From Lepidodermella squamata (Eukaryota > Animalia > Gastrotricha), in contig JBLDXI010000046.1 of the NCBI GenBank assembly GCA_047495785.1, positions 248,001 to 312,000 of the forward strand: a stretch of DNA of 64,000 bases, written 5' to 3'. Below, piece by piece: positions 2,859 to 61,279 of this stretch (positions are counted from its first letter, which is position 1; every line of letters starts with the position of its first letter). Below the pieces are notes generated by a model. It searched no databases. It saw only the letters and a program-made list of their open reading frames with translations, and had not been told where the DNA came from. A program made the translations under genes and the position numbers.

Positions 2859-5576
2859 CTATATCAAATTATGCTTTGAAAAGCGAAAGAACGCAATCAG
2901 AGAACTGCTAGAAATGCCAACGATCAGAGCAAAGCAAGCTGTTAACAGTGTCAAAGCACGGCCATTTTGGTAAATCATCAGTCCGATCAAAATGGTCCCG
3001 AAAATGAGCGTAACCAGGCCAAAGATGAGATAGCTCCACATTTTTAGCTGAAATTCTAAAGCTTTGATCTTCGCAGTAACCATCTTCGCATCTACTAATA
3101 GCGCTTTGATCATCGATGAACAACTAAGGGTTGAGAAAACAAGTTCGAGGCAACAAAGCATAACGAAAATGGCTGCAATCGAAACCAGAATGATCGTGAG
3201 ATTCGTCGCAAAAATGTGCAATACATCACATTCTAGGGTGACGTAGGTCAACTTCAGGCTCTCGTCGAATGGCGAGAACATTGTCTGCAAAATGTCAACC
3301 CGGCTTGCCAACGGAGAGGAGATCACAGAAGCAATGAAGAACATTGAAGAAAATCCCAGTAACAATAGGAAAATCCGGCTTCTTAACTTTCTTCCTTCCC
3401 CTTTCATAGAAGCAGATGATGTGCGAGTTGCAATGCTGCGAGTTTGAGTAGACCGATTGGAGTAGGGATATACCTTCATCGGCTTCGGTGCGTTTTTCAA
3501 TTCATTCGCAATTAGATTCCTCATATTGGTCAATCGAAGCAGTAATCCGGCAATTACAAGGCTCAGTCCTACCCAGAATAGGAACGACATTATCGAGCAG
3601 TAGTAACCAAGGTCTGATGAGTAGCTAATCGGCAGAACAAGACCATGTGAAAGGAGAGTTATATCCCCTACAGCGATCAAAACATCATCGATAATGCATT
3701 GATTTTTAAGGAAATTCCCGGCAGTTTCGTCCAGTTTGCAATGAAGAGGAAACAAAGAAGCGAAACGATGATAGCGCATAGACCTAAAGCATTCCGACAT
3801 AGTATATCGATTAATTCTTGAAGAGTCAAAATCGACTTACATTTAATCAAAATATTGAGAGGTACCTCCAAAATTGGAACACGAACGATTTGAACTCGGA
3901 CTTCATCTTTAGGAGGCAATCCGTCGTGTGTACCCCAAGTGATCGTATTATCGTAGAGAACCAATGGATTCGCCGGTCTAAGGTTTGACTTGTAATAACC
4001 AACTGATTTGCTCTGGCTGAACACATTGCTGGAATTCGTTTCGTCCAAGTAGAACTGTCGATAAACAACTGGCATGCTGCCAGAGGACCACGCTGTTCTT
4101 CGATCGAAGGAATATTCGCCTTTCAATCCAGTCGTAGATAAATTGTAAATTTCATCTCGGATAATTTGCAGAATTTGTTCTGGATCTTTCGCAAAATTTG
4201 CCCTGTCTGTGGTCCACTCGGATAAGGTCATGTTTCCTGGTAAAGCGAGGAATAAATTTGTTTAATCAATCGATTTACTTGAATATTTCAGAAGAATCAT
4301 AAAGCTTTACTTTCCTATTCAAAGCCTTTTCAAGCTCAAACTCACTTGTTCTCAATGTTGTTTCAGTTTGATTCAGGATGAGTCCAACCGCTATGTACTT
4401 ATCATAGAACGCGGGTATCCAGTAGTCCCATCCAAAAACTTGATCCGGATTATCGATTTCTTCCCTCATGCGGCTAAAAAGCCCGTCCAAAGTTGCCCCA
4501 GTCACGTCTGAATGATTTCCTCCGTAAATATCCGACAAAGGTGCGTCCCCGAGGAAGAAAGTTGAACTCAGAATATCAAGTAACATAGCCTTAGTGCACC
4601 ACGGTGACAAGTGCGGCGGAAGTTCGCCTGTCTCATCAAAGTAACTCCACGCAAATGAAATGAATACGAAGCCCGGTCCGTAGAGTCCGTACTTGTGAAG
4701 ATGACAAGCGATGGGTAGATTGAAAAAGTTAAGTGAGACAATGATCCGAGGTTCTCTGGCCTTCAACTCGCTGAAGAGGGATTCTAGCTCATATGAATCA
4801 TCTGTATTCACCCTGAGCTTCCCAATATAAGCCAAGGTCACATTTCTATCATCTAGATTTGTGATTAAGCTTCGTTCGAGCTAGAAAACATAAGTATTTA
4901 AAAGGCCTGAACTACAAAGTCTTGCAAACCATTCCATTGAATAAATGAGAGTCACTTAGGACTGAGATTCGCTTCCAGCCAATTTTTACGATGAACTCAA
5001 CCAATGCGTCGACATAGTAGTCTGCTCTTTCACCGAGTGAATAAAAATTGCGATTCAGTTCTCTGTTTTCATAGAACGAGATATCGTTTGAGAAAGCCGA
5101 TATTGCAATGATATTGTGTGGCTTCGTGAACAGGGCTGATAAAGTCTGAGCGCTACCCGAGCATTCCGTCAGCGAGAGGATCGGAAGTCTCGATTCGACC
5201 GAGAACTGCTCGTCCATTTTTTCGATTAGATTCCTTGTTACAACAGCGTCATCGCACTATAAAAGGTAATTTTTTGATAGGCTGAATCAAGGCCTAAATA
5301 TCTTACGTCATCTTGAACAAGTTCGAAAGAAAGGTCGTAGTCTGGTAGCCAATTATTCATAGAACGCAGACGCTCAAGGGCGAATTCAGCTACGACTGTG
5401 GCCATGGGACCGATGGGTATGCTACCCCTGTAAAATGTGGACGCGAGTACCTTGATAGGCTTTCTAGATTCAATCGAAGAGTTTAAGCGAACGAGATTCG
5501 GCATATCTTCACTCATGTTATGCTTAGATGCAGCGGCTCCTATCAAAGCCAGTATTAGATAAACGTGTAGCTCCAT
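2859..5576 (-). CDS. GABA-B-like class C GPCR, paralog 1 (signal peptide, Venus flytrap domain, 7TM)
   Basis: Multi-exon. Signal MELHVYLILALIGAAAS; VFT motifs WLPDYDL, GWKRISV, CHLHKYGLYGPGFVF..W, GLKGEYSF; seven hydrophobic segments with Cys at the TM3 start and in ECL2; no cysteine-rich domain. Confidence 0.8.
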
Positions 5577-35230: not shown

Positions 35231-37078
35231 TCAATAGCGATTCGTCATGATGTAGAGAAAGATGGCATCGCAAGCCAACGCCATGGTGCCGAAAATACCG
35301 GCCATATAAATGTCGAGAATTCGAATTGTCGATAAACTCAGCAGGCCATGCTTGCCATTTCGGGTTGTCTTATCGACTGCTATAGGTAGAATTATGAGAG
35401 AATAAAGTGTTATGATGACGCCGCTGATGAATTTTAGGAGAACTATGTAGACCAGGTAGACGGGTTCCGAAGTTTTAGGAATTATCGAGAAAACCAGCGT
35501 GAGAAGGACTGAATTTCCCAATACGGCTGTGATTGCGAAAGAAGCTCTTAAAAAGGAGAAAACAAATGTTACAAGAAATAAAAAATCTTCCGAAAATTTG
35601 AGGAATCTGAATTTTAAATTTCCTATAAAAATTAAATAAAATCAATTTAAAATTTAAATTGAAACTCCAAATTTTGGGACTACTCCAAAACAAATGACGA
35701 CATAAAAAATGAGGCCAAAAACTTGATAATTAAGGCAATATGACGCGCGCACATGGTTTTTTCGATAAATATCAGTAAAAAACAGTAAAAAACAGTTTAA
35801 ACGCTAATTTTAACTTTGGCGGTTCTGGTATCACTTGTTTATTTTTTTACCTGTTTGACGTTTTTAGAAATTTGGGTGTTTTGGTGCATTCTTTTTGGCG
35901 TCTTTTGTTTTGTCTTTGCCGTTTTGGAGTAGTCCCAAAATTTTAAAATTTTAAATGAAATTTCAAAATTTTAAATTTGTTAATTTTGTGTTGGCCATTA
36001 TTGTGTTAGTGAAGTGAAAATTTGAAAATTGAATTTTTTTTAATTTTAATAAAATTTTTCAAAATTTCAAAAATCTCAATTGGAAATTGATTTTTTGAAA
36101 TTCATTCGAAAAAAAATAATTTCTTCTGAATTTTAATTGAAGGTTTCATTTTTTCAATTAAATTGAAAATTGATTTTTTCGATTTTAAAAATTTCATTAA
36201 AATTGATATATTTTTTATTTTAACCTGTCTGGCAGTTCTGGAGGCATGGCCAGGCTGAAAACCTGAAGCAGATACGTAGCCACGGTCGGTATCATAATAT
36301 TCATAACATAGTAAACATATTTTCGCTTCAGGCTTATCGTAAACAGCAACTGAGTGTAATGAATGTCACTATCACTCGAGTAAGTTATTTTCTCGAAAGT
36401 TAAAGAATCATAAATCGAATCGGTAGCAAACCTCCAAACCTCTGAGTCGTCTAAAATACCGCCGTTTTTAATGATCATCGCCTCTATAGGGTGAAATTTG
36501 CGTGCTGAAAAATTGACAAAATCATTGCCCTGATTCGGCTCGAAAATCAGCGTGCAGTTCAACTTATCGAAAGGAAATGTCTCGAATTTAAATGACAAAC
36601 ATTTGGTATCAATGCGCCGAATTCCAATGTACTGACCACGTGGTGGTGCTGCGATAGGAAATGGCGTTATCTTTATCTCATCGCCACCTTTTATATCGAA
36701 AGGTAGAGGATTCTCAACCGCGTTAAGGTGGCTTACGTAAGGATGCCAATAACGTTCAGCATCGACGTAGAATGACATGTTTTCAAGCTTGTTGTAACTA
36801 CATAATTTAGCAAGGCCGGCGTGATTTTCGGCTATTTGCCAGCAGTTCAAAACAGGGCACGGGTAGTACCAGCCGAATATGAAATAGACGAAAATTGACA
36901 GAGTTTTCGCGAGATCGTTGATTTCTAGTATTCGAACAAGTTGTAGGGTCACGTTGACTCTTAGCGGATCGCGAAAATCGTTAAGGGCTCCATTTTCAAA
37001 GAGCAAATTTAGGGCTCGAACGGGCGGGCAGGCATTTGCGAATGACTCTTCCAGGGCTTCAGAAACAATTGCATTCAT
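35231..37078 (-). CDS. Atypical Cys-loop (pentameric) ligand-gated ion channel subunit 1, 2 exons; true start uncertain
   Basis: V.V.L.L..I.EIND, W.P, Cys loop C..FPFD...C, pre-M1 LKRK, M1 NIMIP. Phase-2 intron 35548-36224, then M2-M4. Confidence 0.82.
35669..35943. mobile_element. TIR MITE in the channel-1 intron
   Basis: aaattttgggactactccaaaac ... gttttggagtagtcccaaaattt inverted repeat; absent from the paralogous intron. Confidence 0.7.
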
Positions 37079-38739: not shown

Positions 38740-39060
38740 CGGTGTCCTCAAAGGCGTCATCACAACTTAAACCCTCCAGGATATCACGCAGCAGTTGCCG
38801 ATGGGCTGGTTTATGCTTTTGGCTGTTTTCGCCCTTGAAAAACTCGAAAAGCATCATCTCCGCATTCGAAATATTCCTTCTGTGAAAAAGGAACAATCTG
38901 TCTTTGTCATAAAGATCGACGTCATTTGACGTTCTTAGACGAGGCAATAAGACCAGACATGGTAGACCAGGCAAGCTTGCAGTCAGGTTCAAGTAGAGAG
39001 CTTTTTTTAAACTCGACAACATTGTACTCAAAAGTGTTCACCGGACAAATGACGAACCAC
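38740..39060 (-). pseudogene. Relic of a TIR-NB-ARC-ANK paralog
   Basis: DLYDKDRLFLFHRRNISNAEMMLFEFFKGENSQKHKPAHRQLLRDILEGLSCD is nearly identical to 43040-43205 of the intact gene. Confidence 0.85.
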
Positions 39061-39176: not shown

Positions 39177-40586
39177 TTAATAGCGATTCGTCATGATGTA
39201 CAAATAGATGACATCGCAAACGAAAGCCGTAGTGCCGCAAATGCCCGCCATATAAAGGTCGAGAATTCGAATTTTCGATAAACTTAAATGACCATATTTG
39301 CCGTTTCTGGTTTGCTTATCTACAGCTATCGGCAGAATTATGAGGGAATAGAGTGTTAAGATGATGCCGCTGATGAATTTTATGACAACTATGTAGACCA
39401 GGTAGACAGGTTCCGAAGTGTGAGGAATTATTGAGAAAACAAGTGTTAGCAGGACTGAATTTCCCAATACGGCTGTGATTGCAAATGAAGCTCTAAAAAA
39501 AGAGGAAACAAGGAACATAAATAAAACATAACGAAACCTCCTCAAACTTTCATGGTATAATTTTTAAAAATTGGGAAATTTATTGAAAATGATTAAAAAT
39601 GAAACTTCAATTTAAATATTTGAATTTTGATTCGAGAATCAATTTATTTGATTTCACTTGAAAATTGAGTAATTTTTAAAATTTTGATATTCATATTTAG
39701 GAATTTCAAATAAATTTGTAGAGTTTTATTTCAACCTGTCTGGCAGTTCCGGAGGCATGGCCAGGCTGAAAACTTGAAGCAGATACGTAGCCATAGTTGG
39801 TATCAAAATATTAATGATGTAATACAAATATTTCCGCTTCAGACTTATCGTAAACTGCAACTGGGTGTATTGAATTCCGTTTTCATTTGTGTATGTTATT
39901 TTCTCGAAATTCAATGAATCAGAAAGTTGATCATCCGCAAATTTCCAGATCTCTGAATTGTCTAAAATTCCGCTTGAATTCATCGCTTCAAGCGGGCGAA
40001 AACTGCGAGCTGAAAAATTGACCAAAATGTCAGCTTGATTCGGCTCGAAAATCAGCGTGCAGTCCAGCTTATCGAAAGGAAACATCTCAAATTTGAACGA
40101 CTGGCATTTCGTGTCAATGCGCCGAATTCCTACGTACAGACCACGTGGCGGTGTCGAGATAGAAAATGGTGTTATCGTTATCTCATCGCCGCCTTCGATA
40201 TCGAAAGGCAGAGGATTCTTCACCGCGTTAAGGTGGCTCAGGTAAGGATGCCAGTAACTTTTAGCTTCAACGTAAAATTGAACTTTATCGAGACCATATT
40301 TATAGTTGCACAATTTAGCGAGTTCCGGGTGACTTTCGGCCATTTGCCAGCAGTTCATAACGGGGCATGGGTAGTTCCATGAGAATATGAAATAGACAAA
40401 AATTGACAGAGTTTTCGCGAGATCGTTGATTTCGAGTATTCGAACAAGTAGTAGGGTCAAGTCTATTTTAAATGGATCACGAAATTCGTTGAGAACTCCA
40501 TTTTCAAAGGGCAAATTAAGGACTCGAACGGGCGGGCAGGCATTTGCGAATGACGCCTCGAGGGCTTCGGAAGCTGTTGTATTCAT
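39177..40586 (-). CDS. Atypical Cys-loop ligand-gated ion channel subunit 2, 2 exons; true start uncertain
   Basis: Close paralog of subunit 1 with the same motifs and intron position. Confidence 0.82.
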
Positions 40587-41487: not shown

Positions 41488-44400
41488 TTAAATACGTTTC
41501 AGCTCAAAATCTCGCAAGAATTGAACAACTTCGATCTGGTCATTTTCAGCAGCTATCGAGAGCGGGGTTGTGCCATCGTTGTCAGCCATAGAAACAGTTG
41601 CTGGAGCTTTCTCTGCCAGGAATCGAACAACTTCAATGTGGCCATTTTGACCAGCTATCCAAAGCGGCGTTACGCCATCCTTATTAGCCAAAGAAACCGT
41701 TGTCGGAGCCTTGTCTGCCAGGAATCTAACGACTTCGATGTGACCGCTTTCAGCAGCAACAAACAGCGGGGTTGTGCCCTCGTTATTCGCCATAGAAACC
41801 GTGGATTCTGCTTTGTCTGCTAAGAATCGAACAATCTCGATGTGGCCATTTTCAGCAGATATCGAGAGTGGCGTTCTGCCATCGTTATTACACGCGGAAA
41901 CCGTGGTTGGTGCCATGATTGCCAGAAGTCGAACAACGTCGATGTGGCCATTTTGAGCTGCTATCCAAAGCGGCATTATGCCATCGTTGTCAGCCATAGA
42001 AACCGTGGTTGGTGCTTTATCCGCCAGGAATCGAACAACATTAATGTGGCCATTCTGAGCCGCAATCCAAATCGGGACTGTGCCGTTTTTATTAGCCATA
42101 GAAACCGTGGACGGTGCCTCGGCTGCGAGGAATCGAACAATCTCGATGTGGCCATTTTCGGCAGCAATTAACAACGGGTTTGTTCCGTTGTTTTTAGCCG
42201 TAGTTACCAGGCTTGGTGCTTTGTCTGCCAGGAATCTAACGACTTCGAGGTGGCCATTTTGAGCTGCAATCCAAAGCGGCGTTGTGCCGTTTTTATTAGC
42301 CGTGGATATTGTGGTCAGGGCTTTGTCTGCCAGGAATCGGACAACCTCGATATGACCATTTTCAGCGGCTATCGAGAGCGGGGTTGTACTGTCATTGTCA
42401 AGCGTGGAGACCGTGGATGGTGCTTTCTCTGCCAAAAGTCGAACGACGTCGATGTGGCCATTCTCAGCTGCTAAAAAGAGTGGCGTCATGCCGTCGATGT
42501 CCCTCGAAGATAGGGTATCACGTGACTTTCCAGCTGCGAATTCTATTATTTTTCTATCACCTAGTACAGCAGCAATGCCCACAGCTGTGCGTGCCTCTGC
42601 TAGGCTGAAATTGCGTTTCACTGCAGCTAAATCACGGCCTATAACCGATCTAATAAACTGTGACGTATCCTTGCTATTAATTAGGACAGCCACATTTCTT
42701 CTCGCTTGATATCTCCAGTAGTGGCCATTAAAGAAGTTCACTATTTTGTCTCTCTCGTGCTTCAGCAGCTCTAATTCATCGTCGTTCCAAATTTGCATCA
42801 AACATGCCAAATCATTGTGGTCGGCTAAGCATTTTATGTGGCTTTGATATCGCGCTTCGTCGCCCTGCAGTCTTGCAAGCATCCATGCAATCAGACGGTA
42901 GGAATGATGTGTTCCGTACATTTTAAACTCATCCTCTGCACCTCGAATGAAATTGTCTTCCCATTCCAAGCAATAGAGGAAATGAATGAAAGACTTTCCC
43001 TCGCTTCTGCTTGTATACGTGCATACTTCTAACAGTGCATCGCAACTTAAGCGTTCCAGGATATCACGCAGCAGTTGCCGAAGGGCTGGTTTATGCTTTT
43101 GGCTGTTTTCGCCCTTGAAAAACTCGAAAAGCATCATCTCTGCATTCGAAACATTCCTTCTGTGAAGAAGGTACAATCGGACTTTGTCATACAGATCGGC
43201 GTCATTTGGGGCGGTTATCTTGAATTCTTGGGCAGCTCGTCGAAAACCAGCTTCCCAAAGAAGTTGATGCACGGACGAGAGCTCATGATCCCCGCCAACA
43301 GTTCGTATAACAGCGCGCTGATCAAAGGCATTGAACACGTCCTTTGCCCTAAGCTTAGGTGCTAGTTGGCGCCATAACATTGCCAGATTTTCGCTGGAAA
43401 TTAGAGCATTTGGCGCGAAGAGAAGGAAGGCATAGAAGCACTGCCTATAGTCGTCTCCAAGTCGGTCGAGAGAAAACTGCAACAGACTATCGACAGTTTG
43501 TTCTTTGAAACGGGAATCGCCACCGGTCAGAGTAGTATCAAGGTCGTTGGTCTTTTGATGGACCACTTCTTCATACTCCTCGTCCCAATTGTAATTTCCG
43601 AACATGAAGCGATTGGCGATGAGAGACATGATCAGAGGCAAACCACAGCACATTTTCGAAAGGTTTGCTATCTTTTCTTCAGCGTTCGCCTTGAGTTTCT
43701 CCTTCAACTTGCAAGTTCTTTCGAGAAATCGTTCGATCGCTTCATTCGTGAGACTGTCGATCTTCTCCAACTTGTAGATGAGCTGTCGCTGTTGCATTAA
43801 AATCGCAAATGGGTCACGAGTAATGACACAGCAGGCCATTTCTGATTGCTCTTGAATGAAGAAGCGAAGCAATTCCACGTTGAACATGTCATCAAGGACG
43901 ACCAATACACGACGGCGCTTTTTCTCGCGAAAATACTCGCTGATATGAGATATTTCCGATCCAGTAAAGTCCGCTGCTGCTTTCTTTGCCAGAGCTAATA
44001 GACTTTCACGGAATTCTTTCTTGGCTGAGTCATCAAATGATAATCCTTGCCACTTGAAACACTGAAGCCAGAGAACAACCGTTGGCGATTGCAGCCCTCT
44101 TGGGATCGATTCGCTGCGTAGCAATTTCGCCATCAAAACAGACTTGCCTACTCCCCCCTCGCCAGCTACAACCAGAATGCCATTATTGCCTAGTTAAGAC
44201 TTTTATTAAGCTGGATCGAAGAAATAAAAATATTTACCTTTTGCTGATTTATTGCAAATTTCGATTAGATGAGTCATCAATTTGGCTTCCAGTTCATCCC
44301 GCTCAAAGTAGTTCGAGATGCTGATAGGTAAGTTTGAAGAGTAGAACCGATTCGAAACGACTGCTTTCTGGGCAGGCATCTCCAGTATCAGTCGGATTTG

Positions 44401-45151
44401 CTGACAAACATCATTAGCATCGTCGTGGAAGTGCATGGCCTCCGTGCGCAAGAAGACTCTAAGTAAATTTCCGAGGTTTCGAGACTCATCGAGTCGGACA
44501 AAGTCATCTTCCAGATTGACGAGGAGTAATTTCTTTTTCTTGAAGATGGCATAGTCAAATTCTTTAGCAGAATTGGAACCTGCTCTAAGGTATGGTTCGC
44601 AGAGGAAGCAAACAACGATATCAGCCCAGTCTACTTTCTATCGTTGCGAACATGATAAGTGATAAATCTTAGAAGAGACTGAAAACTTGCCTCAATCATC
44701 GCCTGATCGAGATCGCCGCAGATTTTATGAATATCTAAAAACACATCGAAGTCAGGCTGTTGGCTGAGATATTCATCTGTGAGGTTTCGAACGTCAGCTT
44801 CGCGATAACTCCAAGAATAGCTCACAAAAACACGAGCTTTTTTGGCAGAGGCAGCTGATTCTGGCGAAGAGTTCGCCGATTCTTGAATAGGTCGCTGTAA
44901 ATAATAAGGTTTTATTATGCAAAATTTATGACATCAACTTCCTGAACTCATACTTTTTGTGGAAGAGAAGTCTTCTTTGTTGGCAGTATCGTTTTTTTCT
45001 TTGAAATAAAATGATGATGTGTATGATTTGATTTTGACGAGTCTTTCACCCCATCTAAAACTTGAGGGGTGGTTTGCTGTAAAGTGACACCATTTTGTAG
45101 CTAATGGACCAAATTAGTATGGAAACCTACTTTCTCCGAAGATTGTTTCAT
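41488..45151 (-). CDS. NLR-like STAND receptor: TIR - NB-ARC - ankyrin repeats
   Basis: TIR: RVFVSYSW...VFLDI...AMIE/KVDWADIVVCFLCEPYL..SNSAKEFDYA (exons 44894-44691 and 44637-44238). Final exon 44189-41488 carries Walker A GEGGVGKS, Walker B VLVVLDD, ITR, GLPL, MHD-like VHQ and ten 34-aa ankyrin repeats. The short 5' exons from ATG 45151 are phase-compatible but less certain. Confidence 0.88.
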
Positions 45152-47485: not shown

Positions 47486-49400
47486 TTAAAGTCCTTTTAG
47501 GTATCTAACAATTTTGTCATAGCCATATTCAGCAGCTTGTGAAATCGGCGTTTCGCCGTATTTATTAGCAGCGGAAACTGTGGTTGGCGCCTTTCCTGCC
47601 AGGAATCGAACAACTTCGATGTTGCCACTTCCAGCAGCCATCAGAAGTGGGGTTGTGCCATTGTTATCCGCCATAGAAACTGTCATTGGTGCTTTCTCTG
47701 CCAGAAATTGAACAACTTCGATGTTCCCCTTTCCAGCAGCTATGAAAAGTGGCGTTTCGCCTGCGTTATCAGCCGCAGAAACCGTTGATGGAGCCTTATC
47801 CGCCAGGAATCGAACAACCTCGATGCAGCCAATTCTAGCAGCCATCCAAAGCGGAGTTTTTCCTTCGTTATCAGCCACCGAAACTGTAGCTGGCGCTTTC
47901 TCTGCAAGGAATTGAACAACTTCGAAATGACAATTTTGAGCAGCTATCAAAAGTGGAGTTGCTCTGTTTTTATCAGCCGCCAAAAGCGTAGTTGGTGCTT
48001 TCTCCGCGAGAAATCGAACAACGTCGATGTGGCGTTTTTGAGCAGCCATCCAAAGAAGGGTTCCACCTTCGCTATTGGCCGCGGAAAGCGCAGTTGGTGC
48101 TTTTTCTGCCAGGAATTGAACTACTTCGATGTGCCCGTTTTCAGCAGCTATCCAAAGCGGGGTTTTGCCATTTTTATCAGCCGTGGAAACCGTGGCTGGA
48201 GCTTTTACTGCCAGGAATCGAACAACTTCCACGTAGCCATTACCCGCAGCCATCCATAGCGGCGTCGCGCCGTTCTCATTAGCTGCGGAAACCGTGTTTG
48301 GTGATTTCTCGGCAAGGAATCGAACAATTTCGATATGGCCTTTTCTCGCGGCTATCAACAGCGGCGTCGCGCCAATGTTATTAGCCGTGGTAACTGTTTT
48401 TGGCGCTTTTTCCGCAAGAAATCGGACAACATCAATGTTACCATTTTCAGCAGCCATCCATAGCGGGGTTTCGCCGACGTTATTCACCGCTGAAAGCGTG
48501 TTTGGAGCTTTCTCCGCGAGGAATCGAAAAACTTCGATGTGACCATTTCCAGCGGCTGCCAAAAGGGGGGTTACGCCGGCGTCATTAGCTGCGGAAATCG
48601 TTTTTGGTGCCTTGTCTGCCAAGAATCTAACCACATCGATACAGCCCATTTTAGCAGCGATATAAAGCGGGGTTGCGCCGTCGCTATTTGCCGCAGAGAC
48701 CGTAGCAGGTGCTTTCCCCGCCAGGAATCTAACAACTTCGACGTGGCCATTTTGAGAAGCTATCCAAAGCGGGGTTTTACCGCTGTAATTAGCCGCGGAA
48801 ACCGTAGTCGGTGCTTTCTCTGTGAGAAATCGAACGATTTCAATGTGGCCATGCTCAGCAGCAATCCAAAGCGGGGTTACGCCGTTACTATCAGCCGCGG
48901 AACATGAAGTTGGTTCTTTTCCCGACAGGAATCTAACAACTTCGATTCGACCCATTCTAGCAGCAATCCAAAGCGGTGTTGCGTTTTTGTCATTAGCTGC
49001 TGAAACCGTCGCCGGCGCCTTGTCGGCTAGAAATCGGACTACTTCGATGTGGCCATTTTGAGCAGCTACTAAAAGTGGAGTTTCGCTATCGTAACTTGCC
49101 GTGGAAATTGTGGGTGGTGCTTTTTGAGCCAAGAATTGAACAACTTCGGCGTGGCCGTTTTGAGCAGCAATCCAAAGCGGGGTTTTGCCGTCTTTGTCAG
49201 CCGTAGAAACCGTGGTTGGCGCTTTGTCTGCAAGGTTTTTAACAACTTCGATATTGCCATTTTGAGCAGCGATCCAAAGCGGCGTTCTGCCTTTTTTGTC
49301 ACCTGTTGAATGAAAACAAAATGATTTTTTCAGATGCGAATGCTATCATCTTTAATTCACCCTGTATCGCAGCAATCTCTTCTACGGATTTGCCGGCCAT
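47486..49400 (-). CDS. Ankyrin-repeat-only protein with 18 repeats, 2 exons (49400-49361, 49302-47486)
   Basis: MAGKSVEEIAAIQG spliced through a 58-bp phase-1 intron to 18 tandem 34-aa repeats (TPLWIAAxxGHIEVVRFLAxKAPxTVSAA) of the same family as in the NLR. Confidence 0.82.
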
Positions 49401-60646: not shown

Positions 60647-60780
60647 TTACGCTAACCCGTCTATTCTGTGAGAGTGAATCCTAGCAGCCAACCAAAGCGG
60701 GGTTTTGCCGTCTTTATGAGCCAGGCAAACAGTGGCTGGAGCTAAGTCTGCCAGGAATTTAACAACTTCAGAACAGCCCG
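60647..60780 (-). pseudogene. Single ankyrin-repeat relic of the same family
   Basis: GCSEVVKFLADLAPATVCLAHKDGKTPLWLAAR; downstream flank ttggcatta matches the NLR stop flank. Confidence 0.75.
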
Positions 60781-61279
60781 CTGATGAAATAGTCGATCTA
60801 GCATTTGAAACAGGCTGCCACTGCTTTACGATTTTCCTGGTTTTTTTTCCCAACTTTTGATATTTCGATTATGACTTTAAAATGGCAGCATCCCGTGGAT
60901 GAGCGGTGAGAGCTTCTGCCCGATTTTTTTAACTTGCTCTGATCTTAATAGCGGCCAGTCGAATGGAAATCAGACGATGCCTGGGAAGATTCAGTCGACG
61001 CACCTATCGAATCGGTGTTTCTTCTTGTTGTTTACTCTACATGGGGTATTGTTTACTCTCATTATTGAGAGTTTGCTTTCAGTAGAAGAAGGCCTATTGA
61101 AAACTAACTCTTAACGATGCGACACTCTCAATGTGACACATATATAAGAATTTGAATGTTCTTGGTTATTTCGCCCTGTGGACCAATTAATCTTTATTTT
61201 TATAAATCTCCGATAAGGCTCAATACTCATCTCATCTTATTAGCCCTTCATTCTTACCGTATCTTCTGACTGAGGTTCT

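Follow-up and report, generated by a model that had tools for sequence, protein, structure and literature searches.

Positions 41488 to 45151 of a 64,000-nt stretch of the genome of the gastrotrich Lepidodermella squamata (GenBank assembly GCA_047495785.1, contig JBLDXI010000046.1, positions 248,001 to 312,000; the whole stretch is called the window here) hold one gene on the minus strand, running from 45151 to 41488. Our four-exon model encodes a protein of 1108 residues with a TIR domain, an NB-ARC ATPase, a helical region, and ten ankyrin repeats (Table 1), and its coding sequence of 3327 nt is in frame with a single terminal stop. The mechanically called open reading frame (ORF) at 41488-44136 (882 aa) begins at a TTG just past the P-loop, with the open frame extending further upstream, and the TIR domain lies on two further exons. 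This agrees with the initial annotation of the window, which had stated that the ORF track misses the P-loop and part of the TIR and that splicing joins the TIR to the NB-ARC and ten ankyrin repeats; both internal junctions are found in cDNA contigs, and the motifs that it quoted (GEGGVGKS, VLVVLDD, GLPL, VHQ, and SNSAKEFDYA) are all present on the minus strand.

Table 1. Exons, introns, domains, and motifs of the TIR-NB-ARC-ankyrin gene (window positions)
Feature	Position	Strand	Description
Exon 1	45151-45131	minus	ATG plus 6 codons, donor AAA/GTAGGT; putative
Intron 1	45130-44895	minus	236 nt
Exon 2	44894-44691	minus	Low-complexity N-terminal tail and first half of TIR (strand A VFVSYS, VFLD, to helix B)
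Intron 2	44690-44638	minus	53 nt, GC-AG, phase 0, within TIR domain
Exon 3	44637-44238	minus	Second half of TIR (strand C, helix C with Glu101, strand D), then linker to NB-ARC
Intron 3	44237-44190	minus	48 nt, GT-AG, phase 1
Exon 4	44189-41488	minus	NB-ARC, helical region, ankyrin; stop TAA at 41490-41488
NB-ARC ATPase	43246-44187	minus	Pfam PF00931 and motifs
P-loop GEGGVGKS	44163-44140	minus	P-loop Lys is Lys224
Walker B VLVVLDD	43908-43888	minus	Motif
GLPL	43644-43633	minus	Motif
VHQ at MHD position	43272-43264	minus	Residues 515-517
All-helical region	42505-43245	minus	About 245 residues; helical in AF2 model, lower confidence
Ten ankyrin repeats	41491-42504	minus	34-residue period

Two public runs contain the region, and RNA evidence was taken from one of them (X1), recorded only as a guessed RNA run, in the form of short assembled contigs that inform on presence and joints and not on expression level. 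The contigs lack introns, and one loose end in the run is the SMART cDNA oligo. A script check showed one contig to be identical to the window minus exactly 44190-44237, which is intron 3, and the joint recurs in a second contig, which is paralogue-like in sequence. For intron 2, a cDNA contig with a loose end at 44691 links the end of exon 2 (...ATTGAG) to AAAGT..., which is how exon 3 begins; two mismatches follow further along, and the contig would accordingly derive from an allele, a paralogue, or a sister species. The gene is transcribed, and introns 2 and 3 are removed. Both of these introns end in TAG, and the donor of intron 2 is of the GC type (GAG/GCAAGT). Two earlier splice assignments were abandoned: an intron 3 acceptor at 44166 was replaced by 44190 because excision of 44190-44237 reproduces the cDNA contig exactly and brings back the strand ahead of the P-loop, and a GT donor for intron 2 (44687/44633) was replaced by the GC-AG pair (44691/44637) because of the cDNA loose end and an intron conserved in the relative L001, described below. 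At the 5′ end, the exon 1 ATG is the sole in-frame ATG with a donor that suits the exon 2 acceptor, and sequence divergence, as of an intron, starts just above 44894. Alternatively, the acceptor at 44895 could receive a spliced leader, and the lack of an ATG ahead of the TIR in exon 2 bears on that possibility. Introns as short as those of this gene may explain why ORF-based or prokaryote-style gene calls break such genes.

The TIR domain spans approximately residues 20-170, is of the TIR_2 type, and is split by the 53-nt GC-AG intron. To represent the joined domain, a custom hidden Markov model (HMM) was built from four domains found among the HMMER matches to the NB-ARC, all of which are called TIR_2 by Pfam (31-91 bits); the four proteins are exactly those that align best to the spliced N-terminus among the NB-ARC matches. 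Spliced residues 20-170 scored 37.1 bits against this HMM (E 2.5e-10), compared with 16.2 bits for the best of 2000 shuffled controls, and the alignment is unbroken through the exon 2/3 junction. Exon 2 aligns with the first half of TIR_2 domains. In a language-model search (Atlas), exon 2 fell beside SEFIR/TIR_2 clusters at 0.93, with TIR_2 accounting for 44 of 60 matches, and exon 3 beside ThsB/TIR_2 clusters at 0.90, the neighbors of both halves being bacterial TIR_2 clusters. When a profile combining the four TIR_2 domains with both window halves was searched against the PDB, the TIR of SARM1 was retrieved at E 8e-15, followed by TIR-1, Cat1, AbTIR, and plant TIRs. Evidence on the fold comes from the unsplit TIR of a clade member, P0017, rather than from the window's own spliced TIR: with the window halves included in the alignment, its model reached a predicted local distance difference test (pLDDT) score of 84 and was nearest to SARM1/TIR-1 in the PDB (template modeling score, TM, about 0.62-0.66), with the glutamate placed on helix C. 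Assignment of the N-terminus to the TIR_2/SARM1-type TIR domains is well supported, if indirectly, by these sequence comparisons.

The glutamate that the initial annotation had pointed out in SNSAKEFDYA is Glu101 (44562-44560, minus strand), and the profile alignment puts it in the same column as SARM1 E642, as the claim of a retained catalytic residue implied. It is invariant in all six aligned TIRs, which include those of clade members L001 and P0017 and share 18-28% identity.

Exon 4 matches Pfam PF00931 with 38.2 bits (cut-off 23.5) over profile positions 25-223 of 248. Among solved structures, phmmer placed the NB-ARC of tomato NRC1 first (E 2e-6), with the P-loop, Walker B, GLPL, and MHD motifs in register, and VHQ aligns with the VHD of NRC1, so that the histidine of the MHD motif is kept. 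An AlphaFold (AF2) model of residues 210-745, made from a 16-row alignment, had a pLDDT of 73 and a predicted TM (pTM) of 0.65, and Foldseek matched it to the NRC1 NB-ARC at E 4.9e-11 (TM by target 0.59) and to ADP-bound APAF-1 at E 1.8e-9. Overall, the model resembles NRC1/NRC2 in the resting state and APAF-1 bound to ADP (E 5e-11 to 2e-9), then CED-4, ZAR1, RPP1, and ROQ1, and the domain is an NB-ARC with a predicted fold of nucleotide-binding domain, helical domain 1, and winged-helix domain (NBD-HD1-WHD). The helical region between the MHD position and the repeats matches no Pfam family. The Pfam Ank family was found in ten stretches (E 5e-57), and Pfam detected no leucine-rich repeat (LRR) and no NACHT in the protein. 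The ankyrin repeats are closely alike, with variation centered on repeat positions 1-4, 6-7, 10, and 14, which form the usual binding surface of ankyrin repeats.

Relatives of the gene are few. A HMMER search with the NB-ARC over 1.84 billion cluster representatives returned only 61 proteins at E < 0.001, the closest with 29% identity, and no self or near-self match. A word-indexed protein search with the NB-ARC part gave no match, and the same kind of search with a clade profile gave only weak plant coiled-coil-type proteins (CNL; RPS5/RPS2-like, 21-28% identity) and failed to recover the clade members known from HMMER, even those in the query alignment; the word index was evidently swamped, so that this search is silent on annotated animal relatives. 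A quick maximum-likelihood tree of NB-ARC sequences placed the window protein in a 10-member clade with 99% support in the Shimodaira-Hasegawa approximate likelihood ratio test (SH-aLRT), apart from Rx_N-bearing (plant CNL-like) and APAF1_C-bearing sequences and with a CARD-NB-ARC protein as its weakly supported sister. No named fungal or bacterial sequence occurs in the clade, the matches themselves carrying no taxonomy. All members for which the source was looked up come from ENA metagenome assemblies, and the contigs of three of them (L002, L003, and L005) carry animal-type genes (CEP104, CBM_14, Neur_chan_LBD, and Sushi). The 29%-identical relative, L001, is itself a TIR-NB-ARC-ankyrin protein, in which a phase-0 TIR intron lies at the same alignment column as intron 2 of the window gene; once spliced, the L001 TIR reaches 40.8 bits, and the glutamate is retained. 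L004 encodes an unsplit Pfam TIR_2 with an NB-ARC, and an ankyrin ORF follows directly. The remaining clade members are NB-ARC-ankyrin proteins with a different or unknown N-terminus. In L003, a 184-residue ORF ahead of the NB-ARC-ankyrin (3758-4312) matches no Pfam family, gives no TIR signal, and may be another N-terminal effector domain.

Purifying selection appears to maintain the gene. The evidence is a set of single-base differences of which 40 of 169 were listed and which may mix alleles, paralogues, and sister species; 33 of the 40 fall within exons, 20 of these being synonymous and 13 non-synonymous, an excess of synonymous changes over an expected share of 0.25 (binomial p 1.5e-5). 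Of the 13 non-synonymous changes, five affect the low-complexity tail that precedes the TIR, and seven of the 40 differences cluster in a 30-nt part of intron 1 immediately above the acceptor of exon 2.

The gene's neighbors in the window include two Cys-loop channel ORFs and a P450, which indicates that it belongs to the animal and is not a contaminant. Horizontal transfer or contamination had been raised by the bacterial language-model neighbors of the TIR and was rejected because of the spliceosomal introns, the animal neighbor genes, and the relatives on animal-type contigs. The two channel ORFs, at 39726-40586 and 36215-37078 (minus strand), are paralogous, encode about 286 aa each, and lie directly downstream of the receptor gene; they narrowly pass the Pfam cut-off, with matches to the final part of the Neur_chan_LBD profile, and are divergent Cys-loop ligand-gated channel genes. 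Between them, a stretch at 38747-38941 (minus strand) encodes 65 residues that share 77% identity with receptor residues 532-596, in the helical region past the MHD position; the rest of the gene is absent, and the stretch looks like a paralogue relic. At 47489-49309 (minus strand), a neighbor gene has a long run of ankyrin repeats of the same 34-residue type as in the receptor, with 50-61% identity to them, along with some of the pre-ankyrin region (residue 700 onward), and tblastn detected no NB-ARC or TIR of the receptor family upstream of it. A lone ankyrin-repeat-like fragment at 60680-60796 (minus strand) is 47-63% identical to many of the receptor repeats.

We consider it somewhat probable that the locus encodes a real, expressed, and selectively maintained cytosolic STAND (NLR-like) receptor, composed of a TIR acting as an NAD+ effector, an NB-ARC switch, a helical linker, and a ten-ankyrin sensor. 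This reading builds on the domain architecture, the splicing and transcription of the gene, purifying selection, and a glutamate conserved across the clade, all of which are shown here; ligand sensing by the ankyrin repeats, oligomerization, catalysis, and an immune role we infer from plant TIR-NB-LRR proteins (TNLs), SARM1, and bacterial TIR-STAND systems, and it is the architecture that suggests NAD+-cleaving (NADase) activity and a role in immunity. On that model, the ankyrin array would keep an ADP-bound NB-ARC closed until a ligand or a modified guardee binds and frees it. Nucleotide exchange would then lead to oligomerization and bring the TIR domains together, and the assembled TIRs might cleave NAD+ by means of Glu101, either depleting it or releasing ADP-ribose (ADPR) or an isomer of cyclic ADP-ribose (cADPR) as a signal. 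The expected outcome would be a defense or cell-death response.

Several observations weigh against this reading. Taken separately, the exon 2 and exon 3 halves give no TIR match in Pfam, which we attribute to the intron cutting the domain in two; NCBIfam likewise finds no TIR in the separate halves, its one result being a faint match of exon 2 to Thoeris ThcB4, and phmmer of the exon 3 half against the PDB retrieved nothing relevant. Exon 1 lacks cDNA support, the depth of X1 being nil above 44937, and the possibly mixed origin of the listed differences applies to the selection estimate. In the NB-ARC, the aspartate of the MHD motif is replaced by glutamine. In the TIR, the residues that correspond to the diphosphate-binding Arg569/Arg570 of SARM1, after strand A, are Ser-Trp; SARM1 Trp638, four residues before the glutamate, is Asn; and a serine stands three residues before the glutamate, where the four Pfam TIR_2 relatives have cysteine. 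With these replacements, the NAD+ pocket is not canonical.

The first two of the pocket replacements also favor the main rival explanation, in which the architecture is the same and the TIR, as in signaling of the TLR/MyD88 type, would serve for assembly or as an adaptor without catalysis, the oligomer nucleating other TIR proteins. Retention of the glutamate alone is no proof of catalysis, given that TeTIR domains ahead of NACHT ATPases are reported to have NADase activity and yet some members that keep the glutamate to be inactive in isolation (bioRxiv 10.64898/2026.09.21.753143). Against a scaffold-only TIR, the glutamate is invariant across very divergent clade members, and the nearest folds and sequences are of the enzyme type (SARM1/TIR-1, AbTIR, SPARTA, and MilB) rather than TLRs or adaptors. 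Furthermore, most of the glutamate-bearing non-TLR animal TIRs that have been tested are reported to be active, many making cADPR and some depleting NAD+, always in a glutamate-dependent manner (bioRxiv 10.64898/2026.04.20.719644). We regard this explanation as unlikely, although it is the one to be taken most seriously.

The protein could instead be a non-immune STAND, for instance a regulator of apoptosis or development of the APAF-1/CED-4 kind whose ankyrin repeats bind an endogenous partner, as the CARD-NB-ARC sister of the clade, weakly supported in the tree, and the presence of APAF-1 among the best structural matches might suggest. Yet it has neither CARD nor WD40, its variable ankyrin positions are the usual binding positions, and the family appears to be multi-copy, as indicated by the paralogue relic at 38747-38941. 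Lineage-specific expansion is typical of immune receptors, and APAF-1 is usually single-copy. A non-immune role seems improbable to us on these grounds, and we give still less credence to a gene-model artefact, under which the TIR exons would come from a different transcript, or to a decaying pseudogene without function. The unsupported exon 1 and the nature of the RNA evidence, which consists of short assembled contigs derived in part from a paralogue or a relative, are compatible with such an artefact. Both the artefact and the pseudogene are opposed by a contig identical to the window sequence from which precisely intron 3 has been taken out, an open frame of 3327 nt, the synonymous excess among the listed differences, and the recurrence of both the TIR-NB-ARC-ankyrin order and the TIR intron position in a relative of 29% identity.

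If the TIR of the favored STAND receptor is catalytic, the gene provides an animal case of a receptor whose canonical TIR NADase is under the direct control of a STAND switch. To our knowledge, this logic has so far been shown for plant TNLs and bacterial defense systems and has only recently been proposed for the divergent TeTIR-NACHT proteins. Without a catalytic TIR, the gene would still be a useful, if unsurprising, addition to the lineage-specific NLR-like repertoires of animals. In either case, the locus provides a concrete, intact, and transcribed gene of this architecture for functional work. Because the clade is barely seen by HMMER over the cluster representatives, genes of this kind are probably underrepresented in the annotations of small invertebrates whose introns are very short. 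As a more speculative extension, which we put forward tentatively and hold to be less probable than the receptor reading itself, the gene may represent an undescribed, lineage-restricted animal clade of TNL-like proteins (TIR_2-NB-ARC-ankyrin), expanded in this genome, shared with other small animals known only from metagenomes, and overlooked because of its tiny introns. The clade would be of such age that a TIR intron has stayed in place between members of 29% identity, and its TIR would be an oligomerization-activated effector that cleaves NAD+ or produces cADPR, convergent with the TIR-NLR immunity of plants.

Among known systems, plant TNLs such as ROQ1 and RPP1 share with the window protein an N-terminal TIR with the glutamate, directly ahead of an NB-ARC with P-loop, Walker B, GLPL, and a histidine at the MHD position, and the NB-ARCs of the plant NLRs NRC1 and NRC2 are its best matches in both sequence and fold among solved structures. 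The gastrotrich protein differs from TNLs in its ten ankyrin repeats, in place of LRR and C-JID, in its TIR_2/SARM1-type TIR, against which plant TIRs score far lower, in the glutamine at the MHD aspartate, and in being encoded by an animal; moreover, its NB-ARC falls in a clade separate from the plant-like Rx_N sequences. We know of no EDS1 pathway in animals. From APAF-1, CED-4, and Dark it is distinguished by a TIR at the N-terminus and ankyrin repeats at the C-terminus, rather than CARD or WD40, and by the placement of APAF1_C sequences in another clade. It has an NB-ARC, unlike the canonical NACHT-LRR NLRs of animals. SARM1 and TIR-1 of Caenorhabditis elegans have in common with it the glutamate column, a VF.SY strand A, and an F.D motif and are the closest solved TIRs both by profile and by the P0017 fold; however, control of SARM1 lies with its ARM and SAM domains rather than with a STAND ATPase, and its Arg569/Arg570 and Trp638 are not conserved in the gastrotrich TIR. 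The TeTIR-NACHT proteins (TEP1 and NWD1; bioRxiv 10.64898/2026.09.21.753143) are likewise animal STANDs with a glutamate-bearing TIR-like NADase domain immediately before the ATPase, but they combine an extended TeTIR fold containing an RWG loop with NACHT and WD40 or TPR, whereas the protein described here combines a compact, canonical TIR_2 with NB-ARC and ankyrin. The tripartite logic of effector, nucleotide-binding oligomerization domain (NOD), and ankyrin repeats is shared with fungal and bacterial STAND/NLR-like proteins that have ankyrin sensors, from which the gene differs by its spliceosomal introns, its animal neighbors, and its relatives on animal-type contigs.

The novelty that the initial annotation had implied was overstated, since there are earlier reports from animals: TIR-NB-ARC proteins in amphioxus in 2007 (PMC2246300), NACHT/NB-ARC proteins with TIR in the green hydra Hydra viridissima (PMC7642931), NACHT/NB-ARC proteins with ankyrin repeats in Acropora (Hamada et al. 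2013, as described in PMC4083563 and PMC7642931), and catalytic non-TLR animal TIRs in 2026 (bioRxiv 10.64898/2026.04.20.719644). The amphioxus and Hydra proteins, which are lineage-specific NLR-like expansions, resemble the gastrotrich protein in joining a TIR to a STAND ATPase in an animal. As far as the published descriptions go, their C-terminal parts are different: TPR or WD40 are mentioned for amphioxus and its relatives (PMC2246300), and cnidarians other than Acropora have only TPR or WD40 as C-terminal repeats (PMC7642931). The Acropora proteins share with ours a STAND ATPase with an ankyrin C-terminus in an animal, and in those secondary descriptions their effector domains are given as CARD, DED, Death, and glycosyl transferase, with a TIR-NB-ARC-ankyrin combination not stated. 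Our limited literature search found no description of a TIR-NB-ARC-ankyrin protein, and our searches found no annotated relative of the clade. Within a receptor class that is already known, the gene belongs to a branch that is rare and unannotated, and it is the combination with ankyrin repeats that appears to be new.

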